Below, in pieces: positions 537 through 43,503 of a stretch of 64,000 nt of DNA. Made by a program: the position numbers and the translations under genes. The notes below the pieces were generated by a model that was not told where the DNA came from, made no database searches, and saw only the letters and a program-made list of their open reading frames with translations. The stretch's first letter is position 1; every line of letters begins with the position of its first letter. Source of the DNA: Dendrobates tinctorius (lineage: Eukaryota); assembly GCF_039654945.1 (NCBI RefSeq), contig NW_027361731.1:22134001-22198000 (forward strand). The letters run 5' to 3'.

Positions 537-15235
<14,699 letters not shown>

Positions 15236-18279: not shown

Positions 18280-19471
18280 GGCTAGTTTCACACTTGCTTT
18301 TTTTTGCAGCGCGTTTTTCCCGCAAAAAAACGCATTGAAAAAACGCATACAAAAGCATACAACTGCTGCGTTTTTTTCAAGCATTTTTATGAGCATGCAT
18401 GAAAAAAACGCAGCGTTTTTATGCGTTTGTATGCGTTTTTAGTGCGTTTTTACCGCGTTTGCGTTTTTTCCAAACATTAGGTGGCCCCTCACACTAACCC
18501 AANNNNNNNNNNNNNNNNNNNNNNNNNNNNNNNNNNNNNNNNNNNNNNNNNNNNNNNNNNNNNNNNNNNNNNNNNNNNNNNNNNNNNNNNNNNNNNNNNN
18601 NNNNNNNNNNNNNNNNNNNNNNNNNNNNNNNNNNNNNNNNNNNNNNNNNNNNNNNNNNNNNNNNNNNNNCTAACCCTGACCCTAACGCAAACCCTTAACC
18701 AAACCATACCCTGATNNNNNNNNNNNNNNNNNNNNNNNNNNNNNNNNNNNNNNNNNNNNNNNNNNNNNNNNNNNNNNNNNNNNNNNNNNNNNNNNNNNNN
18801 NNNNNNNNNNNNNNNNNNNNNNNNNNNNNNNNNNNNNNNNNNNNNNNNNNNNNNNNNNNNNNNNNNNNNNNNNNNNNNNNNNNNNNNNNNNNNNNNNNNN
18901 NNNNNNNNNNNNNNNNNNNNNNNNNNNNNNNNNNNNNNNNNNNNNNNNNNNNNNNNNNNNNNNCCTAACCCTAACCCTAACCTTGACCCTGACCCTAACC
19001 CTAACCCTTAACCAAACCATACCCTGATCCTAACCCTAACCCTGACCCTGACCCTAACCCTATCCCTAACCCTAACCCTAAACCCCCTTAACTAACCCTA
19101 ACTCTAACCCAAACCCCTAAATTCCATTGTCTAAACTAATGGTAAAAAAAACGCATGTGCAAAAAAACGCATACAAAGCATGCCAATGCGCACATATGCT
19201 CACCATAGACTTATAATGGGTGTCTTGCTGTAAAAAAACGCATTGCGCGCGCATGCGTTTTTTTGAGGCAAGTCGGACGCCCAAAAAATGCAACAGGTTG
19301 CATTTTGTGCGCCCGAGCGCATACCGCAAAAAAACGCATGCGCGGAAAAACGCGTACAAACGCATGTGTATGCGCACATAAGCGCATCCCATGCAAAGTA
19401 TAGGGAAAAAAAACGCATGCGCTATTTAGCGCTAAAATACCGAGAAAAAAAACGCAAATGTGAAACCAGCC
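18280..19471. mobile_element. Harbinger-like MITE carrying a degenerate (CCCTAA)n array
   Basis: TIR ggctagtttcaca / tgtgaaaccagcc with TAA TSD. Empty site tttaTAAccttgg at about 28865. Confidence 0.85.
18494..19120 (+). repeat. Interstitial telomere-like repeat (CCCTAA/CCCTGA variants) with two N blocks (18503-18669, 18716-18963)
   Basis: Direct reading of hexamer repeats around the N runs. Confidence 0.85.
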
Positions 19472-21450
19472 TAACCTTGGCCATATCTGTGCCTTGCCAC
19501 AATTTTGTCTCTGAGCTCCTTGGCCAGTTCCTTTGACCTCCTGATTCTTATTTGGTCTTACAAGCACTGTGAGCTGTGAGGTCTTATATAGAGAGGTGTG
19601 TGTCTTGCAAATCAAGTCCTATCAATTTAATTACACACAGCTGCACTCCAAAGAAGGAGTAGAACCATTTCAAGGAGGATCACAAGGAAATGGACAGCAT
19701 GTGACTTAAATATGAGTGTCCAAGCAAAGGGTCTGAATACTTATGACCATGTGATATTTCAGTTTTTCTCTTTTAATAAATTTGCCAAAATTTCTACATT
19801 TCTGTTTTTTGTCAGTTAAGATGGGGTGCAGAGTGTACATTAATGAGAAAATGTACTTTTTTGAATTTACCAAATGGCTGCAATGAAACAGAGTGAAAAA
19901 TTTAAAGGGGTCTGAAAAATTTCTGTACCCACTGTAATGAGGCGGATGGAGTCACTGTGGATGCCATGTGGCTTCCTATGTCTATCTTTCTAGGCATGCA
20001 TAAAAGCTCAGTCAACCACAGTTTTGTGCACCTCTGAAAAGAACATCTCCAAACTGATTCTAGAGTAACTCTGCTGCCGCATTATAGTGAATAACTTGGA
20101 GGTCTCATCTGAATCCTGTCACTTAGATTTTTAGATGTAAACCCCAATGTAAGTGATCAGGGAAGAGCGTCGGCTCAAATGTTATGGAAAATGTTCCCTA
20201 CAAAAGCTTTAAATCAATAAAAAAAAAAGCAAGTTGCCACTCGGGTCCATCAACTGTCAATGGAAATATAGGTGGCTTCCACGATACTGGTAGCACAAAG
20301 GCTCTGGAAAAGCCCTATGGCTCCTCACCTCCCAAAAGAAAAGCAAATTCTGCGCTCCCAAATCCAAATGTCCCCTCCTTTCTGATCACCACAGTGTGTC
20401 TAAACCATATTTAGCGTCCACATGTTTGTCATTTCTGCAGCGATGACAGCCCACCTACTTTACAGTTGTGTGTTGTGAGGCAGTGACCAGTGTCACAGAT
20501 AGGGGTCGTTGTGTATTCTCCCCAGGATGCGTATGGAGGCCATGAGAGTGCATTGCAGTCACAGGTGTAGCTGTGATTGTAATGCAGACTAAAAATAAGT
20601 GTTAGTCTTGGGGATGCTGGTGTCCAGGGTGTCACACCGCGGCCGCAGGTCCCGCCGCGGCCCCCACTGGTTCCGGCTCCCCTGCTGCTGCCATCCCGGT
20701 CCCTGGCGGCTTGCACGCCGCAGTCTCGCCTGCCCCGGTCCTCACCACGGCTCTCCCGTTACTCTTACCCTGCACTCGCTCCTGCCCGGTATCCTCTGCT
20801 CCAAACAGGCGTGCGCCCCTGCCCGGCTTCCTGCACCTCGACGGGCGCGCGTCCACACTGAAGTCTGGAGAGTGCGCACCCTCCATTCCCTTTGAGCGCA
20901 CGCGCCCTCCTCAGCCTGCGCCAGCTAGGGTCGTGACCCGGAAGTCCTTGATCAGATGCCCTATATCAGGCCGTCTCTTCCTCCTGATGGTGCCTGGTGA
21001 TCGCTCGAGCCCTGCTTGTGATCCTGGCCCCTTTGTCTCTGTTCGCACCCCTGCTCCCAACCTGTCCTCAGCTAATAGTGCCTCTCCGCTGTTCTCTTTC
21101 TTAGGATCCGGAGTTCCGAGGCTCTGTTCCGCCCCGTCCTGGTATCCCAGCTGTGTATCCATCCAGTCCGCGTCTGCTGCCTGTCGTTCCACCCGTGTCC
21201 CTGATCTGTCCGCCTGCCGTGTTCCTCTCCTAGGGCGATTACCTGCCGATCTCTCTTGTGTTCCGTCGGGTCACCGAGGCCCTCTCCCTGGGTACCAGCT
21301 GCCGTGGTGATAGTTACCCGCGGGCCTGCCCCAAACACTCCCTGTATAGGGGGTGGTCCACCTGGTCAGCTCGCCCGTGGGAGGTTCGTTGTCAGGGTCC
21401 AGCGGGTCCACTCCCGGAGTAATACCAAAGTCTCACAGAATCACCTGGCC

Positions 21451-22477
21451 CTGGATCCCGCTGGTACCCCGACCCCGACCCAAAAGGAACTTTTGTTCCT
21501 TCGAGAAAACCAGCCGAGGATCATGTCGTTCCTCAAGACCATGGAGTCCCGTCTATCCGCTTTACAACCCTCCGATCTGGGGACTGCCTCTCAGATCACC
21601 GGTCTCCAGCAGGAGCTCGCCCAGCAGCGCGACACTCAGGCCCATATTTTGAATTATATGGCCTCAGTAGATAACCGCCTGCTAGCTCTTCAGACCGCAG
21701 CGGCAGCCCCAGTCCAGGCGGCAGTTTCGCATCTGTCCCCCTCGGTTGGCAAAACCCCCGCGTTATAGCGGTGACCCCAAGCTGTGTCAGGGGTTCCTTA
21801 ACCAATGCCAGCTACATTTTGAATTGTCGCCTCTGCAGTATCCCACCGACCGGGCCAAAGTAGCCTTTATGATATCCCATTTGGAGGGCGAGGCACTAGC
21901 CTGGGTAAACCCCTTGTGGGAACGTGACGATCCGATCGTCTCCCAGCTTGCGACCTTCTTGGAGAATTTTCGTAAAGTCTTCGATGAGCCCGGCTGCCTG
22001 GTCTCAACCGCTGAGTCCTTATTTAACCTCCGCCAGGGTACTCTCTCTGTGGGACAGTACGCCATCCAGTTCCGCACGTTGTCATCCTAGCTTGGATGGA
22101 ACAACGAGGCCCTGGTAGGGGCTTTTTGGCGCGGTTTGTCTGCTCGGATTAAAGACGAGTTGGCTGGGAGAGACACACCTACGTCTTTGGAGGACCTCAT
22201 CTCTCTGGCAACACGAATCGATCTGCGTTTTCAGGAGCACTCCCTCGAAGCCGCCAGGGAGAGAAGACCTTCTCGCTTCTCCTCTACTACACGCAGCCCT
22301 CCTCGTCCGCGACCCTCCTCCGCGGCGTCTGCACCAGAGCCAATGCAGGTGGACCGACTCAGACCAGCGGAACAGCGTCGCCAGGAGAGATTTACACATG
22401 GTCTTTGTCTCTATTGTGGCAACGCCTCCCATCTCCTGCGTTCCTGTCCGGTGAGGCCGGGAAACGCCTCCGCCTAG
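21451..22477 (+). pseudogene. Chromovirus gag
   Basis: PPRYSGDPKLCQGFLNQC, AKVAFMISHLEGEALAW, LRQG..SVGQYAIQFR, PEPMQVD and CCHC knuckle [14 protein letters not shown]. Frameshift near 21745 and TAG at 22088-22090. Slippery GGGAAAC at 22459-22465. Confidence 0.88.
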
Positions 22478-25412
22478 GACAGGTAAGAGAGGCCTCCCTA
22501 GGTGGTGTCAGTGATACCTCTCTACCCTTGACCCTTTCTGTTTTGTTTGTTCTGGGTTCTAAGCGTTTTTCCGAGGTAGCCTACATTGATTCTGGCGCTG
22601 CCGGGAATTTCATCCAACTCGAGGCGGTGAAAAGATTGCAGATACCTGTCAGGTCCTTGGAGTCTCCCCAGCAGTTAGCTTCAGTCGACGGTGTTCCCCT
22701 GCATGAGACCGTTACCCTGGTCACCGAAGAGGTGGAGTTACAGGTCGGGATCTTGCACCGAGAGAAGATAGCCTTCTTCGTATTGCCTTCGTTATCACAC
22801 ACCTTGCTTCTAGGTCTTTCTTGGCTAAGAATACACGAACCTACCCTGGATTTGCGATCCGGAGACATTCTTCGCTGGGGTCAGTCCAGCCAGACTAAGT
22901 GCCTTCGTCCGGTACAGCCTCTCAAAACTATGCTACCTGCCTCGGGCCCCACGGGTCTGCCCTCGGCTTATTGGGCTTTTGCCAACGTTTTCAGCAAAAA
23001 GGAGGCAGAGACTCTCCACCCGCACCGGCCATATGATTGCTCGATCGATCTGGTCCCAGGTTCAACTCCGCCCCGGGGGCGAAGCTATCCTCTGAATCCT
23101 CTCGAATCACCAGCCATGACAGAGTACGTTCAAAAGAGCTTGGCAAGAGGCTTTATCCGGAAGTCATCTTCACCCGCCGGAGCAGGTTTCTTTTTTGTCA
23201 AGAAGAAAGATGGGTCTCTTCGTCCTTGTATCGACTATCAGGGTCTTAATGAAATCACTATCAAGAACAAGTACCCACTTCCTCTCATTCCTGAGTTATT
23301 TGATCGGCTGCGAGGGGCACGAATCTTTACCAAACTGGACCTCCGTGGAGCCTACAACCTCGTCCGTATTCGCTCCGGAGATGAATGGAAGACCGCTTTC
23401 AACACCAGGGATGGCCACTACGAGTATCTCGTCATGCCCTTCGGTTTGTGCAATGCTCCCACGGTATTCCAGGAATTTGTAAACGACATTTTCCAAGACC
23501 TTTTGTACTCCTGTGTGGTAGTATATCTGGACGATATCCTCGTCTTCTCTCCTGACCTGCCTACCCACAGGAGGAATGTCCGACAAGTACTGTCACGCCT
23601 GAGAGAGAATCGACTGTATGCTAAGTTGGAGAAATGCGCCTTCGAACAGACCTCCCTTCCGTTCTTAGGTTACATCATCTCTGACTCTGGCTTGCGCATG
23701 GACCCGGAGAAACTATCTGCGTGCTCAACTGGCCACGACCTCATGGCATGAAAGCCATTCAGCGATTACTTGGTTTCGCAAATTACTACCAGCAGTTCAT
23801 TCCTCATTTTTCCACCTTGACTGGTCCTATTTCCTCTTTGATCCGTAAGGGAGCCAATCCTCATGTCTGGTCCTCCGAAGCCGAGAATGTCTTCTTGTCT
23901 CTGAAACAAGCCTTCGCCTCGGCACCCATGTTCCATCGCCCAGAGGCCAACAAACCTTTTTATCCTCGAGGTCGATGCTTCCGCGACTGGGGCCAGTGCA
24001 GTTCTATCTCAGAAATCTCCCTCCGGTAGGCTCGTTACGTGTGGGTTTTTTTCCAAAACCTTCTCTACTTCGGAACGAAACTATTCTACTGGAGACAGAG
24101 AACTGCTCACCATTAAGTTAGCTCTGGAGGAGTGGAGGTATTTACTGGAGGGAGCGGTCCATCCATTTACGATTTACACGGACCATAAGAACCTGGCTTT
24201 CATTCGATCGGCACAGAGACTCAACCCTCGGCAGGCCCGGTGGTCCCTGTTCTTCGGCCGATTTGATTTTGATCTGCACTTTCGTCCCGGCAACAAGAAT
24301 CTTAAAGCCGACGCTCTGTCCAGGTCCTTTCTCTCAGCAGATATGGAGGAGGAACCCATGCACATCTTGGAGCCATCCAGGTTCATCACGGTGGCATCGC
24401 TCTCCTTAGTGTCGTCACCTTCGGGTAAGACTTTGGTGCCCGAGAGGAATCGAAGACGGGTCTTGCGCTGGGGGCATACTTCCAAACTTGCTGGTCATGT
24501 CGGATTTAAGAAGACACTTGTCCTTGTGTCCCGTTACTACTGGTGGCCGACTCATCTCCGGGATGTCCGAGATTTTGTTGCCTCCTGTCCGTCCTGTGCC
24601 AAAAACAAGGTGCCCAGGCAGCTGCCTTCCGGTCTCCTTCATCCACTTCCAGTCCCCTCAGCTCCTTGGCAACACGTTGCAATGGATTTTATTACCAATC
24701 TACCCAAGTCTGCGGATTGTACTGTCATCCTTGTGGTGGTAGACAGGTTCTCGAAGATGGCACATTTCATCCCTCTCCCAGGGTTACCTTCTGCACCCGA
24801 TCTGGCGAAACTTTTCATTCATCACATCTTCCGTCTTCACGGATTGCCCCAACATATCGTTTTGGACAGAGGAGTCCAATTCACCTCTCGATTTTGGAGA
24901 GCCCTATGCCGGTCTATGGATGTCACACTCGACTTCTCCTCATCTTACCATCCACAGTCCAATGGTCAAGCGGAGCGGACTAACCAGAATCTGGTAAACT
25001 ATCTCCGGCACTTTTCTAATGCCCACCAGAACGACTGGTCTGACTTACTCCCATGGGCTGAATTCGCCTACAATAGTCATATCAGCGAATCGTCTGGCAA
25101 GTTTCTTTTTTTTGTCGACCACGGGCAACACCCGGGTGTACCTTTACCGGTTCCTCCTGCCTCGGGTGTACCGGCGGCTGATCTTCAATCTGGGGATTTC
25201 TCCAGGATCTGGCAGGAGACCAAGGCCGCTCTCGAGTTAGCACGTGACATGATAAAGAGACACGCTGAGAAAAGGCGCTTGGATGCCCCGCCATATCATC
25301 CGGGGGATAGGGTTTGGCTATCGTCTAAGTTCATTCGTCTAAAGGTCCCTTCACATAAACTGGGACCCCGCTACATTGGGCCTTTTGAAGTTTTGACTCG
25401 TATTAACGATGT

Positions 25413-28102
25413 TGTTACGGCGGCGGAACACGCTTAAAAAATATAAATAAACGTGTTCGCCGTCCGGGGTCCACCGTGCGGCAGGTGTAATAACCGCTGC
25501 TGAAAAGGCAGAGCACCAGGACGGTAATGTGCACAGGAAGAACTGAACCTGGTGCACAAAAGCAAACTCTGTTAAAACTCACAGAGCTGTACCCAAAACA
25601 CAAATTCAAAAAACGCTGTGTCTGTATTAGCCTCACAGACACTCAGCAGCACACGTGCCGTAGCCAAAGCCGGAGTAGTTAAGAACAGCACTACACCCGA
25701 ATGGACTTACCGTAGGTAGGCGTGTGCACGGCGTCGCAACTGCGAACGCCAAAAGCGGGCTGCAAGCGCGATATAGCAGACGCGAAGCAGGACGCTGGCT
25801 GCTGCAACTGGCGGAGTGGCCATGCGCACTTTTTATAGCGTACGGGACCTGCTGGAAATCTCCAGAGTCCCGAACGTAACCAATCAAATCAGGAGCAGGA
25901 CCTGAGCACCTGACTCCTGAACTCCAGTGAAAGCTAGTCCCGTGAGCATGCTCAGAAGCAGGGAAAAAGGACTTAGCCTCTGGAGACAAATGTGAGAATC
26001 TGGGTTGCTGCATAAGCATAGAATGGCCCAGATTCCTAACATTACCCCCCCCTAGGGCCCCCCCTCCCTGAACCCTCCGATCCACCAGCCTGTGTCCGAC
26101 AGCAGCACAGGTCTCAGACTCGTTAAAAGGCGAGCCTGGTCTCCCAGTAGGTGAAACCAAAAACCGGGAGATGCGGACGGTATCGGGGGAGACAAGATCA
26201 CCAGGTCTCAGGAGAGACACCCGGGACACAATGGGAGTTTTAGGAGAAGGCCGCCGTGTATCGGCGGGTGTAGCCACTCTCCATTCGGGAAGACTATCCC
26301 GAGCACATAGGGTGCATGCCCGAATAAATTTTTTTATATCCAGAGCCCTGTGCGGCCACCAATACGAACCGGCCAGTGACTTCGTGGTCTGCATATAGCC
26401 ACGATGGCCGTCCGCATTGGGCGCGTGTGCCCACGCGAGAACTTTAGGCCGCTCGCGAGGAGGGACAAAAGTCTCGCCTACCGATTCGCAATCAGACCAT
26501 TGCGAGGCGCTGTCTTCCTGAGAAGCAGCAGGCAGATGGTGACAACCGCATATGGTCTCCTGCGCCGGACATGTCTCCGAAATGGCGCGAGACACCTCCA
26601 TGGGCTCAGGGGGTAGAACCTCTGGCTCGAGCTGATCCAAAGGCTCAAAAAATTTGGGAGCCGGAGTACCTCTACGCTTGGTGTGAGCACGCTCCAAACC
26701 ACGCTCCGAAAAACAGAGGTCGATACGGGAGGAGATGGAGATTAGCTCCTCCAGAGTGGTGGGGATCTCCCTAGTGGAGAGAGCATCCTTTACGTGCTCA
26801 GCTAGTCCTCTCCAAAAAACTGGGATAAGTGCCTTGTCAGACCACTCTAACGCAGACGCCGGTGTCCGAAAACGGACAGCGTATTGACTTACTGAGAGTG
26901 ATCCTTGAGACAAGGCCAGCAATTGGAGTGAGGTATCGTGTGTAACCCGTGGACCGAGAAACACCTGCTTAATAGCAGTAAGGTGATTAGCTGCGGTCCG
27001 AACATCCAGGTCATCACGCTCCCAAAGTGGCGTTGCCCATTCCAGCGCCTTGCCCGACAATAGGGAAATAATAAAGGCCACCTTGGCCCGTTCTGTTGGG
27101 AATTGCGCAGCCAGCAGCTCCAGATGGATTGAGCACTGGCTGATAAAACCCCTACAGGAGGCGCCATCCCCAGAATATTTCTCAGGTAACGGGAGGCGGG
27201 TAACTGTCGGCGCAAGGGCGGACATGGACATCCGACCCACTGCGTCCGTAAGTGCCTGGACAGCAGCATCCGTGGCCTGCGAAGCTGCGAGGGCCTTCTC
27301 AAGGGTAGTCAAGCGAGCCTCGAGCTGTCGTATGCATTGCACGAGTTGCTGCTGTTCTGCCATTTAGCCAGACGCTGGTGCTAGTATTATGTTACTGCGG
27401 CGGAACACGCTTAAAAAAGTATAAATAAATGTGTTCGCCGCCCGGGGTCCACCGTGCGGCAGGTGTAATAACCGCTGCTGAAAAGGCAGAGCACCAGGAC
27501 GGTAATGTGCACAGGAAGAACTGAACCTGGTGCACAAAAGCAAACTCTGTTAAAACTCACAAAGCCAAAGCCGGAGTAGTTAAGAACAGCACTACACCTG
27601 AATGGACTTACCGTAGGTAGGCGTGTGCACGGCGTCGCAACTGCGAACGCCAAAAGCGGGCTGCAAGCGCGATAAGGCAGGCGCGAAGCAGGACGCTGGC
27701 TGCTGCAACTGGCGAAGCTTGAGCGCGCTGGCGCTAGCGCGCACACTGGCTGTATCCCAATCACTCACACATTCGTATTATCAGAGGGAAGGGGTTTCAT
27801 AATAAGTCATTCACCAGTCCAAGCATCCATCACCAAACACACAGCAGCAAGTATGGAAAATACTAGCGCATGGCATAGCGGCCTTGGCACTTTTTATAGC
27901 GTACGGGACCTGCCGGAAATCTCCAGAGTCCCGAACGTAACCAATCAAATCAGGAGCAGGACCTGAGCACCTGACTCCTGAACTCCAGTGAGAGCTAGTC
28001 CCGTGAGCATGCTCAAAAGCAGGGAAAAAGGACTTAGCCTCTGGAGACAAATGTGAGGATCTGGGTTGCTACATAAGCATAGAATGACCCAGATTCCTAA
28101 CA
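25413..28102 (-). mobile_element. Non-autonomous LTR mini-element 1 (Gag plus integrase HHCC only), nested in the chromovirus integrase
   Basis: TSD GATGT (25408-25412, 28103-28107). LTRs 25413-26041 and 27390-28102, both TG..CA. PPT next to 26041. Interior 1348 bp. Confidence 0.92.
25633..27363 (-). CDS. Gag-HHCC fusion ORF of mini-element 1 (576 aa, uninterrupted, reads into the 3' LTR)
   Basis: Sushi/PEG10-like capsid region (LPEKYSGD..CRGFISQC..AKVAFIISLLSGKALEWA), then WAH..GH.G..YWWP..CTLCAR. No protease, RT, RNase H or DDE core. Confidence 0.85.
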   Translation of the reverse strand: MAEQQQLVQCIRQLEARLTTLEKALAASQATDAAVQALTDAVGRMSMSALAPTVTRLPLPEKYSGDGASCRGFISQCSIHLELLAAQFPTERAKVAFIISLLSGKALEWATPLWERDDLDVRTAANHLTAIKQVFLGPRVTHDTSLQLLALSQGSLSVSQYAVRFRTPASALEWSDKALIPVFWRGLAEHVKDALSTREIPTTLEELISISSRIDLCFSERGLERAHTKRRGTPAPKFFEPLDQLEPEVLPPEPMEVSRAISETCPAQETICGCHHLPAASQEDSASQWSDCESVGETFVPPRERPKVLAWAHAPNADGHRGYMQTTKSLAGSYWWPHRALDIKKFIRACTLCARDSLPEWRVATPADTRRPSPKTPIVSRVSLLRPGDLVSPDTVRISRFLVSPTGRPGSPFNESETCAAVGHRLVDRRVQGGGALGGGNVRNLGHSMLMQQPRFSHLSPEAKSFFPASEHAHGTSFHWSSGVRCSGPAPDLIGYVRDSGDFQQVPYAIKSAHGHSASCSSQRPASRLLYRACSPLLAFAVATPCTRLPTVSPFGCSAVLNYSGFGYGTCAAECL

Positions 28103-28602
28103 GATGTCTCCTATAAACTGCGGCTCCCCGCCTCTCTTCGCATCCCTAATTCATTCCATGTGTCCCTTCTAAAACCGGTCATCCTCAATTGCTTCCATGC
28201 CTCTGCTACCCAGTCGCCTCCGCCTGTGTCCGCTGATGATGAGTTCGAGATTAAAGACATTCTTGCTATGAAAAAGCAACGAGGGAGGATCTTTTTTCGG
28301 GTCGATTGGAAGGGCTTTCGTCCAGAGGAAAGATCCTGGGAGCCTCGGGAGAATATCCAGGCTCCTCGAATTTTGGCTAAGTTTTTCTCCAGTCTGCGGA
28401 GGGGGGCGCGTGAGGGGGGGGTACTGTCACACCGCGGCCGCAGGTCCCGCCGCGGCCCCCACTGGTTCCGGCTCCCCTGCTGCTGCCATCCTGGTCCCTG
28501 GCGGCTTCCACGACGCAGTCTCGCCTGCCCCAGTCCTCACCGCGGCTCTCCCGTTACTCTTACCCTGCACTGGCTCCTGCCCGGTATCCTCTGCTCCAAA
28601 CA

Positions 28603-29329
28603 TCTGTGGAGCTCAGCCACAGTGATCTGTAAAGTGCTGCGGAATATGTTAGCGCTATATAAAATAAAGATTATTATTATTATTATTATTATTATCTTGG
28701 GGTTCTTCTTTACCTCTCTCACAAAGGTTCTTCTCCCACGATTTCTCAGTTTTGCTGGACGGCCAGGTCTAGAAAGACTTCTGATGGTCCCAAACTTCAT
28801 CCATTTAAGGATTATGAAGGCCATTGTGATCTTAGGAACCTTGAGTACTGTAGAAATTCTTTTTATAACCTTGGCCATATCTGTGCCTTGCCACAATTTT
28901 GTCTCTGAGCTCCTTGGCCAGTTCCTTTGACCTCCTGATTCTTATTTGGTCTTACAAGCACTGTGAGCTGTGAGGTCTTATATAGAGAGGTGTGTGTCTT
29001 TCCAAATGAAGTCCTATCAATTTAATTACACACAGCTGCACTCCAAAGAAGGAGTAGAACCATTTCAAGGAGGATCACAAGGAAATGGACAGCATGTGAC
29101 TTAAATATGAGTGTCCAAGCAAAGGGTCTGAATACTTATGACCATGTGATATTTCAGTTTTTCTCTTTTAATAAATTTGCCAAAATTTCTACATTTCTGT
29201 TTTTTGTCAGTTAAGATGGGGTGCAGAGTGTACATTAATGAGAAAATGTACTTTTTTGAATTTACCAAATGGCTGCAATGAAACAGAGTGAAAAATTCAA
29301 AGGGGTCTGAAAAATTTCTGTACCCACTG
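28603..29329 (-). mobile_element. Tc1/mariner fragment (duplicate of the 17980-19934 element)
   Basis: Transposase N-terminus KRISTVLKVP..IILKW.KFG..PGRPAKL..VREVKKNP..TVAEL. TIR ends at 29329 followed by TA. Confidence 0.85.
28629..28693 (+). mobile_element. 65-bp LINE/SINE 3' tail inserted in Tc1
   Basis: gtaaagtgctgcggaatatgttagcgctatataaaataaag plus (ATT)n, flanked by ATCT. Related tails lie on the minus strand at about 6003-6055 and about 53444-53493. Confidence 0.7.
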
Positions 29330-29868
29330 TAATGAGGCGGATGGAGTCACTGTGGATGCCATGTGGCTTCCTATGTCTATCTTTCTAGGCATGCATAAAA
29401 GCTCAGTCAACCACAGTTTTGTGCACCTCTGAAAAGAACATCTCCAAACTGAGTCTAGAGTAACTCTGCTGCCGCATTATAGTGAATAACTTGGAGGTCT
29501 CATCTGAATCCTGTCACTTAGATTTTTAGATGTAAACCCCAATGTAAGTGATCAGGGAAGAGCGTCGGCTCAAATGTTATGGAAAATGTTCCCTACAAAA
29601 GCTTTAAATCAATAAAAAAAAAAGCAAGTTGCCACTCGGGTCCATCAACTGTCAATGGAAATATAGGTGGCTTCCACGATACTGGTAGCACAAAGGCTCT
29701 GGAAAAGCCCTATGGCTCCTCACCTCCCAAAAGAAAAGCAAATTCTGCGCTCCCAAATCCAAATGTCCCCTCCTTTCTGATCACCACAGTGTGTCTAAAC
29801 CACATTTAGCGTCCACATGTTTGTCATTTCTGCAGCGATGACAGCCCACCTACTTTACAGTTGTGTGT

Positions 29869-31377
29869 TGTGAGTCAGTGACCAGTGTCACTGATAGGGG
29901 TCGTTGTGTATTCTCCCCAGGATGCGTATGGAGGCCATGAAAGTGCATTGCAGTCACAGGTGTAGCTGTGATTGTAATGCAGACTAAAAATAAGTGTTAG
30001 TCTTGGGGATGCTGGTGTCCAGGGTGTCACACCGCGGCCGCAGGTCCCGCCGCGGCCCCCACTGGTTCCGGCTCCCCTGCTGCTGCCATCCAGGTCCCTG
30101 GCGGCTTCCACACCGCAGTCTCGCCTGCCCCGGTCCTCACCACGGCTCTCCCGTTACTCTTACCCTACACTCGCTCCTGCCCGGTATCCTCTGCTCCAAA
30201 CAGTCGCGCGCCCCTGCCCGGCTTCCTGCTCCTCGACGGGCGCGCGTCCACACTGAAGTCTGGAGCGCGCGCACCCTCCATTCCCTTTGAGCGCACGCGC
30301 CCTCCTCAGCCTGCGCCAGCTAGGGTCGTGACCCGGAAGTCCTTGATCAGATGCCACCGTCTCTTCCTCCTGACGGTGCCTGGTGATCGCTTGAGCCCTG
30401 CTTGTGATCCTGGCCCCTTTGTCTCTGTGCGCACCCCTGCTCCCAACCTTTCCTCAGCAAATAGTGCCTCTTCGCTGTTTTCTTTCTTAGGATCCGGAGT
30501 TCCGAGGCTCTGTTCCGCCCCGTCCTGGTCTCCCAGCTGTGTATCCAGTCCGTGTCTGCTGCCTGTCGTTCCACCCGTGTCCCTGATCTGTCCGCCTGCC
30601 GTGTTCCTCTCCTAGGGCGATTACCTGCCGATCTCTCCTGTGTTCCGTCGGGTCTCCGAGGCCCTCTCCCTGGGTACCAGCTGCCGTGGTGATAGTTACC
30701 CGCAGGCCTGCCCCAAACACTCCCTGTATAGGGGGTGGTCCACCTGGTCAGCTCGCCCGTGGGAGGTTCGTTGCCACGGTCCAGCGGGTTCACTCCCGGA
30801 GTAATACCAAAGTCTCACACAGGGCAGAGTTGGGAAAACTTGCTCTGGGGTTTTTGTATTTTGAAACAGACTGCAGGATGGTAGTCTTGCAGTCCGTTTC
30901 ATTCCATGCCCAGGTTTTCTATGTGGCTGAAGACCACGGATCCCAGTTAAAATCCCTGCAGTATAGTGTTTGGGTGTGTCAGGGCCAGAGTCAGTTGGTG
31001 CTTGCTAGTGTACAGAACAGTCGGCTTTGCAGAGCTCTACCTGTGTGAAGCAACACAAGCCAAGGCAGCTGAATAGCCTGGCACCCACCACCTACACAGC
31101 AGTGCAGTCGTCCACGGCAATGGGTATCGGAGGTGAACTGTTTTGTGCCTGGTGGCGGACTAGCGTGTTTAATGGCTGCAAACTGGAGGGCATGGCTGCA
31201 GATTGCGATCCGGAGGATACTGGGTGCTATGTAGTGCTGTGAACTGGACATTAATGCTGTGCACTTGTGTGAATTGGACATTTTATGCTGTGAAGTAACA
31301 CATTAAAGAGACTTTTGTGTTGGAACTTTGCTGGGTCACTGCCTCAACACTGCGCAGCGTGCTTCCATGGCACTACA
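29869..31377. mobile_element. Solo LTR (TGTGAG..CTACA, TSD GTGT) hosting the chromovirus insertion; its left end is duplicated at 20474-20629
   Basis: GTGT at 29865-29868 and 31378-31381. Empty site gttgtGTGTctaca at about 62837. Confidence 0.75.
30025..30819 (+). mobile_element. Solo LTR of the chromovirus
   Basis: Near-identical to 20630-21437. TSD CAGGG at 30020-30024 and 30820-30824. Confidence 0.93.
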
Positions 31378-32670: not shown

Positions 32671-33025
32671 TGAACTTCATCTGGGACCCCATGCAGCTGA
32701 AAAATATTCTGTGTTAGGGAAAGCGGAACGCACTAAATATTAAATAATAGAAAGTGCGTACGCCGCCCGGGGTCCACCGTGCAGAGATGTTAAACTTCTG
32801 CTATGTAATGGCAGACGCACAATATGGCGTTATATCGCACGTGGGTTGAATGTCACCCGGTGTGTGCTGGCGAGCTCTGTTAAGTTCACAGAGGCGCCTA
32901 AGGCATAAACGTAAATGCTGAGCTTGTTGACCTCACAGATCTCAGCGGTGTGCACTCACTGTATATGGTCACAGGACTCAGGCCCAAGACACAGGGTCAG
33001 AGTCCGTCTAGACCTACCGTGCGTG

Positions 33026-34337
33026 TGTGATGCCCCTGAGGCTCAGTCGCCACAGAGGTACTGCACCTTCTCCTAAGGTGTGGTGCCCCACCATCCAGGT
33101 AAGTTGAAGGCTCCTGACCACGCTCCAACACTCGCACCCCACACAATAGAGTACTTCAGCAAAACCACATTGCGGCTCCTTGCTTAGAGGGAAGCAGAGC
33201 ACCTTTGGTGGTTCCCTGCTTGGAACACTAAACGTGCTGGGAGGTGGGTGGAGTTGAGATACACATAAAAGAGCGGGAAGGTTTTAGGATTGAGGTCAGT
33301 CAGACGGAGAGTCTGAGAGAGGAAGCCACTCAGAGAGGAGTGGGGATCCTTGGAAGAGGGATGGAGGAAGGAGTGCTGCAGCTGCCTCAGTGATCTGAGC
33401 CAGCTAGCATGGGAAAGGAAAGAAGGAGAAAGACATTGAACCGAAGCCTGAGCTTCCATAGAAGGGAAAGACAAGTACGGAACGTAGGAGTGAAAGGGAA
33501 CACAGAGGACGTGGGTTAGAGGAAGAACCCTGCCTAGAAGTTCCAAGCGCAAGGCCGGGGCCCGGTCCCCGAGGTTGTATGGACACTAATGGTTCTGCAG
33601 CAGACACCGGTGGAGTAGTGGGCTGTAAATGCACTACTCCCATCTAAGACTTGGGGGCACAACAGCAATTTGGATAGAGAGCCAGGACTCAGGAGTAGAG
33701 AGTCCCCGAAGCAGGCTACAGCTGTCTGCTGTACAAGTAGAGTTCTTGAGAACATCTGTCAGGAGGAACTTCAGTGTACCTCAGTACTAGGAGATCTTCA
33801 CACTTAAAGGCGCTATAGAGGAGACATTCAGAAAAGGCACATAAGTTGGCGGAGTGTTGGAAGGGAGCATTCCATCTTGCCTGGAGGTTGACTGAGTCCC
33901 TGACCCGGAGGACACGGCACAGAAGCGGGCACGACAGACTGTGAGTAAAGCTTTGGAACTACATGCCCTGGTGTCCTCCATTCCTTCCTGCGTCCATCCG
34001 CCTGGCACTGCTACATCCTCTGCGCCAAACACTACACCATCTAAGTGCCACTTCACCTATCCTGCCCCGGGACAACAGCTCTGCCTGTGGAGGGCTATAA
34101 TATCATTGCTGCACCACACCATCTGTCCCGGAGGATCTGTCTGCAGCGTCGGCTTAACACCTCCCTTGCCGAACACCACAGGTGGTGTCACGAACTATTC
34201 CATTAACTACATTCCACCATTCACATCTTCCTATTACTTGGGTGCCCAGGGCCACGGTCTGGGTCACCGCTGTTGTGACACATCCCACTGATACCGGCCC
34301 GGTACCGAGTACCCCACAGCCCTGGGAGGGCGACCCA
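33026..34337. mobile_element. Solo LTR X
   Basis: TGTGATGCCC..GGGCGACCCA termini with TSD CGTG. The host LTR sequence resumes afterwards. Confidence 0.7.
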
Positions 34338-35048
34338 CGTGCGGCGTCGCTACCACGGATGCCAACAAGTGCTGCTGACTGCAGCACAGCCACTGACACA
34401 TCCGCTGTATGACAATGCCCAAGAGGGGGCGCACTTGTAGGGAAGGTGGACTGACGGACGGACCTGTCTGCAGTGGGAAGGCAGGGGTGTGGAGTATTTT
34501 GGATGGACTGCTGTGGTGAAAGATGGGAAACAGCTGGAGATAAAGAGGAAGGATGTAGTAGGGGAGTTTGACCATTAGAGGGCAGTGGAGAGTGTGAGGA
34601 TGAGACTGAACAACTGCCATTGGCCGAAGAAACTGTCAAGTCATGGGGGGAAGGGTTACCAGAACGTGACGGAGATATGCTCAGCTACTTACCGGTAGCG
34701 GTGTTTTTCAGGAGCCCATGACAGCACCACGAGAGAGGGGATCCGCCCTTCAGGGACAGGAAACCTACAGACATAAAAAGGGCGCTTCAGTTGGATTACA
34801 GAGCATGAGAGGACCTCCCTGGTTAGTAGCAATTCATATACTGTATACACAGTCAAACTAAATATTCTTCACACCTGTGACTAACGTTTAACTGGAAGAA
34901 AAGGTGCTGATCCAGAACGTGAGAGCAGAGGGAGGGAATGTAAAGGTGCTGTCATGGGCTCCTGAAAAACATTGCTACCGGTAAGTAGCTGAGCATTTAT
35001 TCAGTCGCCATGACAACACCAAAAGAGATTTACAGAGATGAAGAGAAC

Positions 35049-36480
35049 TTAGGGAGGGATAACTGCCTCAAGCACCTTTCTCCCAAACGTGAGGTCGGCG
35101 GACCCGCTTAAATCCAATCTATAGTGGTTAAAAAACATGGATGGAGAGGACCACGTGGCTGCCTTACATATGTCCTCAATGGATACTTCCGATCTCTCTG
35201 CCCAGGATGTTGCCACGGACAGAGTAGAGTGCGCCCTTATGCCTTCCGGAATCTCCAGCCCACCTGCTGTATAAGAAAAAGAAATTACCTCCCTAATCCA
35301 CCTAGCTAGGGTGTTTTTGGACACTCTAAGTCCTTTTCTAGCTCCCTGAAAAGATACAAAAAGGGCATTGTCCCTTTTCCATGGTTCTGTGGCCGAAATG
35401 TAACTACGGAGGCACTTCCTTACATCTAGGGAATGGAGCTTCTGTTCAGTTGGGTTAGTGGGGTTCGGGCAGAAGGATGGGAGGACTATTTCTTGTAGTC
35501 TGTGGAACTTTGAGGCAACTTTGGGCAGATACGAGGGGTCTGGCTTTAAAGAGACCCTATCTTCTCCAAACTGGGTGTATGGAGGTATCCTAGAGAGGGC
35601 TTGTAGATCACTAACTCTCCTGGCTGATGTTAGGGCAACCAACAGGGCAGTCTTGAAGGAAAGGATATTTATGGAGACAGAATCAATAGGCTCAAAGGGG
35701 GGTTCTGTTAAAGCTGATAAAACTAAGTTGAGGTGCCATGGAACCAGCTTCTGTTTACTGATGGGTCTAGATCTCGCTGCTGCTTTAATGAATCTTGCCA
35801 CCCAGTAATTGTTTGCTAGGTTGCAGTTGTAAAAATGACCCTAGAGCCGAAACCTGGACTCTAAGCGTATTTGTGGCTAGACCCATCTCCAACCCCTTCT
35901 GAAGGAATTCCAGTATCTGGCCAATGTGGATTTTCTGACCAACCTCTGCCCCTGAGACTGATAAGAATCTTTTCCAGACTCTGGCGTAGATATTTGTCGT
36001 GGCGGCTTTCCTGCTTTTTAATTGGGTGTTGACTAGTCCCTGGGAAAACCCCCTCCCCCTTAGCAGCTCCCCCTCAAACTCCATGCCACTAGGTGTAAGT
36101 TGGAAACCCGAGGGTGACACACTGGACCCTGGGACAGAAGGTCCGGAAGCTCTGGGAGAATCCATGGCTGTGACGAAGACATCTTCCTCAGCCAAGGAAA
36201 CCATGGTCTCCTGGGCCAGAATGGGGCTACTAAGATAACGTGAACCCTGTCCTCCTGGATCTTCCTCAGTACCATCGGAATCATATTCAGTGGGGGGAAG
36301 GCATACGCCAGGTCGAAGTTCCAAGGGATCAGGAGAGCGTCCACTGCATACGGGTTCTCTCTGGGATCCAGAGAACAAAACATAGGGAGTTGTCTGTTCC
36401 TTCTGCTGGCGAACAAGTCTATTTCTGGGAGTCCCCACCTGCGTTTGATCTGTCCGAAGATGGGCCTCTTTAGTGCCCAC
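35049..36480 (-). pseudogene. DIRS tyrosine recombinase (frameshift near 35800)
   Basis: TSARRVSDLQAL, LDV, RAHSTL, ATWSS..FFNHY. Confidence 0.88.
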
Positions 36481-37950
36481 TCTCCCTGTTTGAGCCTGTT
36501 GCGACTTAGGAAATCAGCTGTTAAATTTTGTTTTCCTTTTACAGTATATGGAGGGCTGTAAGGGACAGAAGGTGAACCTCGGCGATCTGAAAGATACGAT
36601 TCGCCACATCCATTAAGGGCCTGGATCAGGTTCCCCCTGGTGGTTAATGTAGGCTACAGTTACCTGGTTGTCTGAGAATAGTCTGACGTGTTCGCCCTGT
36701 AGGGACATAAGGAAAGCACTTAGAGCCCGCTCCATGGCTAACAGCTCCTTAAGGTTAGAGGAAAAATTCTGTTCTGACGGTGTCCACGCTCCCTGGACCC
36801 ACCTATCCCCTATATGTGCTCCCCAGCTTCTGGGGCTAGCATTCGTGGTTAGAATTCGGGAGATCTGGTTTACCCAGGGAACTCCCCTACGCAGATTTGG
36901 TATCAGCGACCACCATCGTAGGGACTGAATGGTATTGTTGGATAAGGTAACTCTACCCTCGAGGCGACCTTCTAGCTGACGAGTGTTGTGTAAAATGTCC
37001 CACTGCAGGGTTCTGGTGTGGAATTGGGCCCAGAGTACTGCTGGTATACACGCCGTAAGTGAACCCAACAGTGACATTGCCCCTCTAAGAGTAATTGATG
37101 GATTGTCTATCACCCTGAGTATCTGACGCTGAATGTTGAATACTTTAGATTCTGGTAACCGACACTCCTGTATATCAGAGTCTAGGATAAGGCCGAGGAA
37201 CTGTTGCACTTTTAGGGGCTGCAGTCGTGACTTCTTAAAATTAATGATCCAACCTAGACCCTGAAGGCTGGATATTACTTTCCCTAATTGGGTGGTGCAG
37301 TGAGACTCCGAGTGCCCCACAATTAGTAGATCGTCTAGATATGGGATCACGAGAATATCTTTTTCGTTCAAATGAGCCATAACCTCCGCCATTATCTTCG
37401 TGAAGACCCGGTGTGCCACCCCAAAGGGAAGTGCCCTGTATTGGAAATGGCATACAACTCCGCCCAGTGAAACAGCCACCCTTAGAAATTGCTGATGATC
37501 TGCGTGTATCGGGACATAATAATAGGCGTCTTTAAGGTCTAAGACTACCATAAAGCACCCACTGAATAGTAATTTAACCGCTGATTTAACAGACTCCATT
37601 TTGAAAGAGTGAATTTCAATGAATTTATTGAGGCTTCAGAGATTAATAATGGTGCGGAAGGAGCCGTCTGGCTTCTTGGCTAGAAAGAGGGTGGAGTAAA
37701 TCCCCGTACCTCTTTGTAGCTCAGGAACCTTCACCAAGACACCCTTCTGGAGAAGATCCAGGATCTCTGCCTCCAACGCCTTCTGTTCTGTAGATGAAGA
37801 ACGGATGGAGGTTAGAAGAAACTTCTCACGAGGAGTATGCTGGCACTCAAACCTCAGTCCTATTCTGATAATGCTCCGTATCCAAGGACTGTTTCAAATA
37901 CGTGACCAGGCTGGGTAGAAGGACAACAACCTCCCCCCCACCTGGTCCGG
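36060..37950 (-). pseudogene. DIRS RT/RNase H/adenine-methyltransferase-like ORF (frameshifted)
   Basis: DLKDAY, LPFG, YLDD, NLKEL, SDNQVTVAYINHQG, then DLFAS..DAL..YAFPP..VAPFWPRRPWF. Confidence 0.9.
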
Positions 37951-37953
37951 CAG

Positions 37954-39394
37954 TCATTTCGGATCGCTGCGGTCCCGAGGGGTATTAAACATATACCCCC
38001 TACCTTTCCTCCTTGTGTCATATCTGGGTCTTTCTCTTGTTGTTCTCCTACGGTCAAACCACCTTCTGAAGGAATCTCGTCTGTAAGGTGGTCTTCCTAA
38101 GTAGGGGAAGCGTTTCTTGCTGTCGCCAGCTTTCTCTAACAGTTCATCTAGCACTTTACCAAATAAGTAAACCCCTTCGCATGGGATACCGCATAACTTT
38201 GATCTGGCCTGCATGTCACCTGGCCAACATTTGAGCCACAGGGCCCTACGGGCGGCATTGGAGAGGGCCGCGGATCTGGCTGCTTACTTCACAGAGTCTG
38301 CCGACGTGTCTGAGAGGAAGGCTGCCGCTCCCTGGGCTGTAGAGAGGGAGGAAAGAATGTCCTGTCTTGGGACCTTATCTCTAAGCTGCTCTTCCAACTG
38401 GTCCAACCATACCATTAAGGACCTGGCAGTGCACATGGCAGCGATCGCTGGTCGTAGGGCTCCAGCTGATGTTTCCCAGGTCCCCTTAAGGAACACATCC
38501 GCCTTCCTGTCCAGCGAGTCTTTTAGGCTACCAAGGTCTTCAAAAGGTAGGGACGTCTTTTTGCACGCTTCTTTTGAAGGCAGGAAGCAGGGAACCCTTC
38601 CTCTTGGGGTTTTTCCACTCCCTTGTGATAAGGGCACTAATCTTGTCTACCAATGGGAAGGACCTTCGATTTTTTCGGTCCAATCCCCGGAACATCGAAT
38701 CCTGTACTGACTTTTCTGTTGGGGTCTCCTCAATCCCCATTGTGCTGTTTACCGCCTTTACTAGATGATTGACTCGCTCTAGAGGAAAACAGGAATGGGC
38801 CGATCTGGCTTCAGATGATGATGATGAGGATGAATGTGACTTTAACTCCTGCGAGTCACTATCAGAGACCAGAACGGGAGATCTAGGGGACTTCTCCCTG
38901 AACCCTGTGTCGGGAGATAGGGATCTGACCGAACCCCTAACCTCCTGCCTGACTATCTCCCGTATACTGGCGGTAAAGACAGCGGTCTCTTCTGTGACTA
39001 GGCGATGTATGCAGGGTCTACATAGCTTCCTTCCCTGACCGTCCGGAAGGAGAACCCCACATTCGGCACACTCTCTGTGCTTGCTCTTCCCAGAGCACTT
39101 TTTCCCCTGGCAGAATGGAGAGAGGGAACATAAGGGGAACAGAAAATCACCAAGGTGAACTTCCTCGCAGCTCACTTACCCTGGCTTTTGACAGAGCGGT
39201 ACCGAGTTCGGTGGGGGGTCCATTGGAGCCGCCGATCCTTTACGGCTCGTGGACTTTTCTGGTTTGGCCTTCTGGGTAGATCTATGCTTCTCAGAGCAGC
39301 TGCTGCTGCTAGACCGCTGCTGGGATTTTTCTGAAGGCTGAGGCTGCGTCTGTGGATGCTCGTCCAGAGACTCTGCTTGCTCCTGCGACGCCAT
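37954..39394 (-). pseudogene. DIRS gag-like ORF (fragmented)
   Basis: CAEC..CRPC finger, LKDSLDRKAD and EGVYLFGKVLDEL motifs across ORFs 39176, 38540, 38284 and 37954. Confidence 0.75.
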
Positions 39395-41852: not shown

Positions 41853-42043
41853 TCCCAGATTTTTCTTTCTCTGTCACTATTAAAAAATGACCTTTCAATA
41901 TTAGGGCTTTTAGATCTGCCATACTGTGCCCAGGTCTAGAGAAGTGTATTCCTACAGGCGGATAATAGATAAAGTCCCCATACCCAACACAAAGCAGGGC
42001 TAGAAGATCATGGAGTCTTCTTCATGTACATCCTCCATATACC

Positions 42044-43503
42044 CCGTACACACACGGCTCCGCTCCGTACACCTCGTACACACACGGCTCCGCTCCGTAC
42101 ACCTCGTACACACACGGCTCCGCTCCGTAAACCTCGTACACACACGGCTCCGCTCCGTACACCTCGTATACACGCGGCTCCGCTCCGTACACCTCGTACA
42201 CACGCGGCTCTGCTCCGTACACATCGTACACACACGGCTCCGCTCCTTACACCTCGTACACACACGGCTCCGCTCCGTACACCTCACACACACGGCTCCG
42301 CTCCGTACACCTCGTACACACACGGCTCCGCTCCGTACACCTCGTACACACACGGCTAAGCTCCTTACACCTCGTACACACACGGCTCCGCTCCGTACAC
42401 CTCGTACACACACGGCTCCGCTCCGTACACATCGTACACACACGGCTCCGCTCCTTACACCTCGTACACACGTGGCTCCGCTCCTTACACCTCGTACACA
42501 CGCGGCTCCGCTCCTTACACCTCGTACACACACGGCTCCGCTCCATACACCTCGTACACACACGGCTCCGCTCCGTACACCTCGTACACACACGGCTCCG
42601 CTCCGTAAACCTCGTACACACACGGCTCCGCTCCGTACACCTCGTATACACGCGGCTCCGCTCCGTACACCTCGTACACACGCGGCTCTGCTCCGTACAC
42701 ATCGTACACACACGGCTCCGCTCCTTACACCTCGTACACACACGGCTCCGCTCCGTACACCTCACACACACGGCTCCGCTCCGTACACCTCGTACACACA
42801 CGGCTCCGCTCCGTACACCTCGTACACACACGGCTAAGCTCCTTACACCTCGTACACACACGGCTCCGCTCCGTACACCTCGTACACACACGGCTCCGCT
42901 CCGTACACATCGTACACACACGGCTCCGCTCCTTACACCTCGTACACACACGGCTCCGCTCCTTACACCTCGTACACACGCGGCTCCGCTCCTTACACCT
43001 CGTACACACACGGCTCCGCTCCGTACACCTCGCACACACACGGCTCCGCTCCGTACACCTCACACACACGGCTCCGCTCCGTACACCTCGTACACACACG
43101 GCTCCGCTCCTTACACCTCGTACACACACGGCTCCGCTCCTTACACCTCGTACACACACGGCACCGCTCCGTACACCTCATACACACACGGCTCCACTCC
43201 GTACACCTCGTACACACACGGCTCCGCTCCGTACACCTCGTACACACACGGCTCTGATCCGTACACACGCGGCTCCGCTCCGTACACGTCGTACACACAT
43301 GGCTCCGCTCCCTACACCTCGTACACACACGGCTCTGCTCCGTACACCTCATACACACACGGCTCCGCTCCGTACACCTCATACACACACGGCTCCGCTC
43401 CGTACACCTCGTACACACACGGCTCCGCTCCGTACACCTCATACACACACGGCTCCGCTCCGTACACCTCGCACACACGCACCTCCGCTCCGTACACCTC
43501 GTA
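42044..43503 (+). repeat. 30-bp minisatellite (acacacggctccgctccgtacacctcgtac), about 49 copies
   Basis: Direct tandem repeats without spacers; occasional 28-bp units. Confidence 0.97.

Follow-up and report, generated by a model that had tools for sequence, protein, structure and literature searches.

A putative self-priming, non-autonomous chromovirus lineage encoding a Gag–integrase HHCC fusion in Dendrobates tinctorius

Two LTR mini-elements in the window

The DNA analysed here is a stretch of 64,000 nucleotides from the dendrobatid frog Dendrobates tinctorius (contig NW_027361731.1, positions 22,134,001 to 22,198,000; hereafter the window, to whose numbering positions refer unless a locus is named). 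It is rich in transposable elements and carries on its minus strand two long terminal repeat (LTR) mini-elements, copy 1 and copy 2, each with a single open reading frame (ORF) in which a Gag protein is joined to the N-terminal zinc-binding (HHCC) domain of an integrase (Table 1). The initial annotation of this DNA had described them as two insertions with their own 5-bp target site duplications (TSDs), diverged LTRs and interiors of closely similar length, and direct reading together with LTR alignment gave the same picture. The LTR pair of copy 1 differs by a Kimura two-parameter distance (K2P) of 0.041 (BLAST and MAFFT; indels of 160, 77, and 1 bp) and that of copy 2 by 0.048, and the two interiors are identical at 79% of nucleotide and 73% of amino acid positions.

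The frame in each interior starts with an ATG approximately 25 nt past its primer binding site (PBS); it runs through Gag, a linker, the HHCC domain and a tail. It had been annotated as preserved, which holds for copy 1, where it is uninterrupted and continues into the LTR, and which has to be qualified for copy 2, where an in-frame TGA in Gag is the sole interruption. Copy 1 Gag consists of a long N-terminal helix and a Ty3/PEG10-type capsid, with the motif PEPMEV at its end. Both copies were matched by Pfam models of Gag families (Ty3_capsid, Retrotrans_gag, DUF4939) and by Integrase_H2C2 (E-values of 7e-13 and 1e-14), and in neither copy was there a Pfam match to protease (PR), reverse transcriptase (RT), RNase H or the integrase core. 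The enzymes are absent as had been claimed, but the CCHC zinc knuckle, listed as missing too, is still present as a decayed remnant in the linkers (ICGCHH.., ICDCHR..); the copy 1 linker holds this vestigial knuckle (ICGCHHLPAASQ) and approximately 8 aa of pre-integrase sequence. Behind the HHCC domain of copy 1 follow, in this order, the last strand of the integrase SH3 domain (WRVATP), VSLLRP (equivalent to FHVSLLKP), a linker, a stub of the first chromodomain strand (ESE..AAVG), and ..VQGGG.

Table 1. Positions of the mini-elements, their parts, and the chromovirus that carries copy 1 (P0158 and P0011 are the Ranitomeya imitator relatives described in the text; PPT, polypurine tract; LTRs are named in element orientation)
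Element	Feature	Position	Strand	Remarks
Copy 1	Entire element	25413-28102	-	2690 bp, single ORF
Copy 1	TSD, left	25408-25412	.	GATGT on the plus strand, direct reading
Copy 1	3' LTR	25413-26041	-	629 bp; TATA box 25829-25837
Copy 1	Interior	26042-27389	-	1348 bp
Copy 1	PPT	26042-26075	-	GGGAGGGGGGGCCCTAGGGGGGGGTAA; immediately 5' of the 3' LTR, direct reading
Copy 1	Junction and tail, aa 357-436	26056-26295	-	Local alignments to P0158 1157-1206 and P0011 1187-1218
Copy 1	Integrase N-terminal HHCC zinc-binding domain, aa 296-356	26296-26478	-	Pfam PF17921, E 6.6e-13
Copy 1	Linker, aa 259-295	26479-26589	-	Aligned with P0158 and P0004
Copy 1	Gag, aa 1-258	26590-27363	-	Pfam Ty3_capsid, Retrotrans_gag, DUF4939; ATG 27361-27363
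Copy 1	PBS	27375-27387	-	ATACTAGCACCAG; 2 nt past the 5' LTR; without tRNA-type TGG start
Copy 1	5' LTR	27390-28102	-	713 bp; TATA box 27890-27898
Copy 1	Self-primer in 5' LTR	27860-27869	-	GCGCTAGTAT; complementary to the PBS
Copy 1	TSD, right	28103-28107	.	GATGT; ACATC in element orientation
Copy 2	Entire element	54054-57148	-	3095 bp, single ORF
Copy 2	TSD	flanks of 54054-57148	.	AGTAT on the plus strand; ATACT in element orientation
Copy 2	3' LTR	54054-54928	-	875 bp; TATA box 54653-54661; self-primer sequence 54621-54631
Copy 2	Interior	54929-56286	-	1358 bp
Copy 2	Junction and tail, aa 357-438	54945-55190	-
Copy 2	HHCC domain	55191-55373	-	Pfam PF17921, E 1e-14; translation checked
Copy 2	Linker with vestigial knuckle	55374-55484	-	12-residue knuckle remnant
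Copy 2	Gag	55485-56258	-	One in-frame TGA at 55797-55799
Copy 2	PBS	56271-56285	-	TATACTAGCGCCAGG
Copy 2	5' LTR	56287-57148	-	862 bp
Copy 2	Self-primer	56854-56864	-	GCGCTAGTATA; 11-nt exact PBS complement, ~30 nt past a degenerate TATA
L001	Mini-element	5613-8114 of locus L001		ORF intact; 5' LTR truncated; LTR K2P 0.068
L004	Mini-element	18508-21439 of locus L004		TSD GGTGG (element orientation); LTR K2P 0.010; one 2-bp Gag frameshift
Host chromovirus	Entire element	19472-30819	+	LTRs 19472-21437 and 28866-30819, K2P 0.017
Host chromovirus	Gag	~21743-22267	+
Host chromovirus	PR-RT	22405-23751	+
Host chromovirus	Integrase	24343-25412, resumes 28108	+	Interrupted by copy 1
Host chromovirus	Chromodomain	within 28160-28930	+

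Shared deletion junctions and selection on the reading frame

An exhaustive HMMER search identified two proteins of Ranitomeya imitator as the nearest full-length relatives of the mini-elements: P0011 (= CAJ0945012.1), which has a Chromo domain, and P0158 (1550 aa). Mapping onto P0158 placed residues ~291-820, residues ~891-1156 and the chromodomain among the parts that are gone. Retained were (i) Gag to EPMEV, the decayed knuckle, and ~8 pre-integrase residues, (ii) the HHCC domain to ~7 residues past C-x2-C, and (iii) a stretch that opens with the last SH3 strand, includes FHVSLLKP, and ends at the first chromodomain strand, followed by a terminal ..AQGGGG that is encoded by the PPT. The initial annotation had implied two deletions and suspected a chromodomain stub; the alignment to P0158 and P0011 revealed three deletions, the third of which takes the chromodomain after its first strand, and this retained strand is the stub. 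A P0158/P0011-like autonomous ancestor would have undergone these deletions in frame: the first starts behind the zinc knuckle and takes out PR, RT, and RNase H, the second takes out the catalytic core of the integrase along with most of its SH3 domain, and the third the chromodomain.

A protein search returned a 438-aa "uncharacterized protein" of D. tinctorius (XP_073425377.1) with an architecture identical to that of the mini-elements in the window, as well as isoform models of MFAP2 with mini-element sequence as their N-terminus, and the loci of these proteins yielded two more D. tinctorius mini-elements, L001 and L004. The four interiors are 1344-1358 bp long and collinear from end to end at 74-79% nucleotide identity (21-26% difference), and the indels in their coding regions amount to three of 6 bp, which are in-frame, and one of 2 bp. 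Between subfamilies, indels accumulated at 13-19 per kb in the LTRs vs 1.5-5 per kb in the interiors. All three deletions are common to the four copies, three of which (copy 1, copy 2, and L004, the exception being L001) have their own 5-bp TSDs, and the LTR pairs within elements are 93-99% identical (K2P 0.010-0.068). Since all junctions are shared across 21-26% divergence it is the reduced form that constitutes the replicating unit, and the low LTR divergence shows that its activity continued until recently. The reduced mini-element is therefore a replicating lineage that has diversified into subfamilies. That the lineage transposes in its reduced form had been proposed from the two copies in the window, and the four copies with their uniform rather than heterogeneous breakpoints bear this out.

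Other searches added no further members: a contig search for sequences encoding the copy 1 ORF or P0002 gave no match, matches in a protein search with the post-Gag part were limited to the two D. tinctorius proteins, and when metagenomes were scanned with the PBS, a single 22-nt match came up that lacked any other similarity (~0.5 expected by chance).

In the NCBI annotation one copy is a protein-coding gene (XP_073425377.1) and another forms part of the MFAP2 models, as might be expected of a host-domesticated gene family with a PEG10/RTL-type Gag rather than of a mobile element. This explanation is hardly tenable, however, in view of the LTRs, PBS and PPT in every copy, the TSDs in three of the four, LTR pairs that are only 1-7% different, and the unrelated insertion sites, one of them inside another retrotransposon. 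L004 is a young copy that is located in sense orientation inside the MFAP2 gene model. The MFAP2 isoforms X1/X2 (XP_073426350/1) begin at an internal Met of the mini Gag, run through the HHCC domain, the tail, and the U3 region of the 3' LTR, and then meet the normal MFAP2 start; they represent either an exonised element or an annotation artefact.

Selection on the frame was estimated for the four copies by maximum likelihood under the GY94 codon model, with broken codons handled as missing or X, and the HHCC segment was also analysed with F3X4 frequencies and segment-specific trees. The ratio of nonsynonymous to synonymous substitution rates (ω) was 0.17 for Gag (p 1e-50 in the test against ω = 1) and 0.23 for the HHCC domain (likelihood ratio 43.8, p 4e-11), or 0.20 for the latter under F3X4 and segment-specific trees (p 1e-12). 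The linker (0.69), junction (0.85), and tail (0.75) did not differ significantly from ω = 1. A first pairwise estimate between copy 1 and copy 2 agreed with these values. Fitting the HHCC domain and its flanks separately improved the log likelihood by 12.7 over a single model (2Δ = 25.4, p ~0.005 even with 10 degrees of freedom). Because synonymous divergence is not lowered in the HHCC segment, its constraint is on the peptide and not on the RNA.

Stop codons provided a second measure. The neutral tree length at four-fold sites was 1.23 substitutions per site, of which post-insertion decay makes up ~7%, and the neutral expectation of stop-creating substitutions was 31 in Gag, 4.7 in the linker, 9.6 in the HHCC domain, and 6.4 in junction plus tail. 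One was observed in Gag and none in the other three segments (P of zero stops 0.0096 in the linker and 0.0016 in junction plus tail), and linker, junction, and tail are also without frame-breaking indels. The entire frame has been kept open, and sequence conservation is confined to two folded modules, the capsid and the HHCC domain. The earlier proposal that the fusion is under selection and not in random decay was thus confirmed segment by segment, with an HHCC ω well away from 1 and loss of zinc ligands in none of the four copies.

Ordinary dead deletion derivatives, in which an open frame and both domains were retained by chance, are accordingly a very improbable account of the minis. Fish and frog-like Logan contigs do contain heterogeneous predicted proteins of the Gag..HHCC type (P0135, P0078, P0107, P0003), so that internal deletions sparing the HHCC domain are common. 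Against this account stand the ω values of 0.17-0.23 (p 1e-11 to 1e-50), stops far below neutral expectation, indels that are nearly all in-frame, and identical junctions across 21-26% divergence.

The zinc ligands H, H, C, C and the YWWP core of the HHCC domain are invariant in the four minis when aligned with 12 autonomous elements, and Pfam PF17921 scored above its cutoff for this segment. All four minis have G-Y-M-Q-(T/V) at copy 1 aa 322-326 vs G-x-[KR/QTH]-[KR]-T in the 12 autonomous elements, whereby two basic residues are lost at a near-invariant position after the second HHCC His; VPP and WPHR are further residues private to the minis and absent from autonomous elements. In phylogenetic trees the minis were monophyletic for both Gag (support 92-95) and HHCC (99) and sister to P0158. 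This monophyly, together with the private residues, argues for a single origin and independent evolution.

AlphaFold2 modelled the long N-terminal helix and capsid with predicted local distance difference test (pLDDT) values >90 and the HHCC domain with 90-97, the latter with helices at 302-312, 323-330, 339-349, and 351-356; pLDDT was <55 in the linker and <50 in the tail, both of which are predicted to be disordered. A PDB sequence search aligned HHCC residues 296-355 with residues 47-104 of the N-terminal domain (NTD) of prototype foamy virus (PFV) integrase (E-value 0.009). Foldseek on the whole model gave matches to capsids, namely the C-terminal capsid domain of PEG10 (7lga), Ty3 capsid (6r24), Arc, and PNMA2, and no HHCC match. 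As Foldseek matched only the capsid, the HHCC assignment relies on Pfam, the PDB sequence search, and the AlphaFold2 helices, which together predict a candidate zinc-binding domain with a helical bundle fold.

A self-priming signature, the putative role of the fusion and the genomic setting

In their PBS (ATACTAGCGCCAGG[G/A]TCTGGC), PPT, and LTR ends (TGTTAGGA...CCTAACA), the minis are nearly identical to L003, an autonomous element of Ranitomeya imitator. Copy 2, L004, and L003 each have, ~30 nt past the LTR TATA box and thus at the expected start of the transcript, an 11-nt sequence that is exactly complementary to the PBS; in L003 it is located at approximately position 421 of the 5' LTR. 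Copy 1 has a 9-nt match between primer and PBS, owing to one PBS substitution, and in its 3' LTR the self-primer segment is gone through the 160-bp deletion. Priming by a tRNA was considered and rejected, as the PBS has no TGG start and the window contains no tRNA genes, which leads to the self-priming reading. Self-priming was first shown for Tf1 and has been implicated in vertebrate Tf1/sushi elements (PMC4600332). Judged by the arrangement of primer and PBS, the mini family is a putative member of the group using Tf1/sushi-type self-priming.

We consider it likely that the minis are a chromovirus lineage of the Tf1/sushi type in dendrobatid frogs, self-priming and non-autonomous, to which enzymes are supplied in trans and whose fusion protein acts in cis. 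The 2.7-3.1 kb element left by the three deletions would have gone on transposing and divided into subfamilies, keeping the cis elements needed for replication (LTR ends TGTTAGG...TAACA, TATA box, 11-nt 5' self-primer, PBS, and PPT) and borrowing protease, RT/RNase H, and integrase from a related autonomous family. The single ORF would give rise to a capsid-type Gag without a working knuckle, a disordered linker, the HHCC domain, and a disordered tail. This protein probably prefers its own encoding RNA, in the manner of the mouse intracisternal A particle (IAP) element 1Δ1, since selection reaches the ORF of a parasite only if the protein favours its own RNA. It would probably assemble around its own transcript together with helper Gag or Gag-Pol and promote transposition of that RNA. 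For the HHCC head the most probable role would be to engage helper integrase or Pol via NTD-to-core contacts of the kind made in trans in intasomes, or else to make up for the lost knuckle.

A stronger version, in which capsid and HHCC domain form an adaptive "hook" that captures helper integrase or Pol or replaces the knuckle, with the enzymes and the knuckle discarded and GYMQ as a lineage-specific feature, is put forward tentatively and seems to us somewhat doubtful. If it were true, the minis would represent hyperparasites that code for protein, an architecture undescribed among LTR retrotransposons, and a natural experiment on HHCC function outside integration. The loss in all minis of the two near-universal basic residues after the second HHCC His, which hints at altered function, and the decayed knuckle would also suit interference, in which the capsid-tethered HHCC domain acts as a poison to helper particles or to intasomes, as Ty1 p22 or trans-dominant Gag does, either to the benefit of the mini or as a brake tolerated or favoured by the host. 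Interference is rather unlikely, as inhibition of the machinery on which the mini depends should reduce its own spread, and strong purifying selection together with continued transposition (LTR K2P down to 0.010) better fits a role in promoting replication.

Several points weigh against a non-autonomous lineage with a cis-acting fusion. The fusion protein was characterised by its sequence and predicted structure, and the sample comprises only four copies, two of which were found via protein databases, a route that favours open frames. No autonomous P0158-like element was present in the 115 kb of Dendrobates-type DNA examined, the matching element being one of Ranitomeya. In Ty3, a construct of capsid and integrase (CA-IN) failed to rescue cDNA synthesis and a CA-RT-IN construct succeeded (PMC5371799), so a capsid-tethered integrase part is not automatically useful. 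Ty3 integrase does have roles beyond integration, and its mutations affect early reverse transcription (PMC5371799). Finally, the LTR and ORF trees conflict, with K2P between copy 1 and L004 at 0.19 in the LTRs, 0.28 in the interior, and 0.71 at four-fold ORF sites, which suggests LTR swapping between mini subfamilies; recombination thus occurs in the family, and helpers could in principle be involved.

A rival explanation is borrowed selection, in which co-packaging and template switching would repeatedly overwrite mini Gag and HHCC with helper sequence, so that the low ω reflects the helper and not the fusion protein. The LTRs of copy 1 and L004 being far closer than their ORFs, and the sampled candidate helpers having come from outside the minis' own genome, both leave room for such exchange. 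We nevertheless regard it as unlikely: Gag and HHCC of the minis are each monophyletic vs every sampled autonomous element, GYMQ, VPP, and WPHR are common to the minis and absent from autonomous HHCC domains, and overwriting 180 nt without restoring the deleted flanks requires two crossovers each time; moreover, all four copies share the same junctions.

Copy 1 is inserted in a chromovirus on the plus strand (Table 1), and excising it with one TSD restores the integrase frame of this host element, with ...GPFEVLTRINDV before and SYKLRLP...FHVSLLKP after the insertion point. The initial annotation had named this chromovirus as a plausible helper. It was rejected as such, since its PBS and LTR ends differ, its 3' LTR is not preceded by a visible polypurine tract, and its Gag and HHCC are only 51% and 37% identical to those of the minis; it is a bystander, and the matching cis signals are found in the P0158/P0011-like family of R. 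imitator. Copy 1 sits in the SH3 domain of the host integrase directly before ..SYKLRLP (25412/28108), 1-2 residues from the homologue of the 3' edge of the second deletion in the minis (directly before WRVATP, aa ~360), a closeness that is probably coincidental. The LTRs of the nested copy 1 (K2P 0.041) are more diverged than those of the surrounding element (0.017). Transversions are equal in the two LTR pairs (6/552 in copy 1 vs 16/1953 in the host), and the excess divergence consists of transitions only. The mini LTR is CpG-rich, and transitions driven by CpG are the probable cause of this discrepancy in age; alternatively, the composite element may have been re-copied.

Further features of the window include N runs at 18503-18669 and 18716-18963, just upstream of the 5' LTR of the host chromovirus (assembly gaps or masked sequence). 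Two segments at 32712-32893 and 40898-41182, 8 kb apart in the same orientation, each resemble a different part of the mini-type LTR (~72% similarity). They are separated by RT/RNase H ORFs on the minus strand that belong to an unrelated element (34154-40374), and the pair may be one related LTR that a later insertion divided. Positions 41943-43500 hold a long tandem array with a 30-bp period in at least 47 overlapping registers, which is GC-rich with a strong negative GC skew.

Relation to known systems

Non-autonomous LTR elements are usually regarded as non-coding passengers or as Gag-only elements, and roles of the HHCC domain beyond intasome assembly are still debated. In the minis, the parasite's own chimeric ORF is under domain-resolved purifying selection, with the capsid and a 60-residue HHCC domain conserved and the rest drifting in frame, a pattern that singles out the HHCC domain as worth keeping on its own. 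The minis thereby offer a concrete system that is open to testing, in a vertebrate whose genome is giant and rich in LTRs. The family, which is not described in the D. tinctorius genome paper, may help to account for some of the large share of LTR sequence reported as "unknown" in poison-frog genomes.

The autonomous Tf1/sushi-group chromovirus of R. imitator (P0011, P0158, L003) resembles the minis in Gag (59-64% identical) and HHCC (42-54%), and L003 shares with them a nearly identical arrangement of TATA box and 11-nt self-primer besides the cis signals already named. It belongs to another genus, encodes PR, RT, RNase H, the full integrase, and the chromodomain in ~3.7 kb more interior, and retains the basic G-x-K-R-T motif in its HHCC domain. 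With the Tf1/sushi group of Ty3/gypsy chromoviruses in general the minis have the Ty3-type capsid Gag and the self-priming arrangement in common, but the chromodomain is reduced to its first-strand stub and RT is missing. Domesticated Gag genes of the PEG10/RTL/Arc type differ from the minis, which have LTRs and cis signals and are located at unrelated sites.

The predicted proteins from fish and Logan contigs that have Gag and HHCC and no RT or integrase core form a heterogeneous set, which may consist of gene-model artefacts or of dead copies. A different deletion derivative from Logan (L002, SRR5149504; cluster members P0167-P0172) encodes Gag, knuckle, protease, HHCC, and tail in 726 aa without RT or integrase core and has the same length in three contigs of its cluster. 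Its identity to the mini Gag is 48%, and it may represent a second family that is transcribed and has kept the HHCC domain.

The LARD and TRIM elements of plants are non-coding, and BARE2 is near full-length with defective Gag expression; to our knowledge, none of the three has been reported with a selected fusion of Gag and an integrase domain. As parasitic partners, they have cis signals matched to an autonomous family (PMC4350172). The structurally closest known system is that of the plant TR-GAG elements, which are <4 kb long, have LTRs, PBS, PPT, and a single Gag ORF, and presumably depend on an autonomous partner for mobilisation in trans (Chaparro et al., 2015, PMC4350172). The minis likewise are <4 kb (2690 and 3095 bp) with LTRs, PBS, PPT, and one ORF that includes Gag. 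TR-GAG elements are by definition without similarity to protease, integrase, RT, and RNase H, whereas the minis match Integrase_H2C2; TR-GAG elements were described in plants, and the minis are vertebrate elements derived from a Ty3/gypsy chromovirus, with the knuckle lost and a selected HHCC domain.

Functionally, the closest analogue of the minis appears to be mouse IAP 1Δ1, which belongs to an unrelated retroelement class and whose gag-pol fusion acts in cis and makes most new IAP insertions (PMC6466679, citing Saito et al., 2008). In both cases in-frame internal deletion fuses gag to pol in a non-autonomous yet successful element, and the cis action of 1Δ1 is what purifying selection on the frog ORF would imply for the minis. 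IAP 1Δ1 is a class II endogenous retrovirus in which a single 1.9-kb deletion left much of pol in place, whereas the frog mini is a derivative of a putatively self-priming Ty3/gypsy chromovirus in which three deletions reduced pol to a 60-aa HHCC domain and remnants predicted to be disordered.

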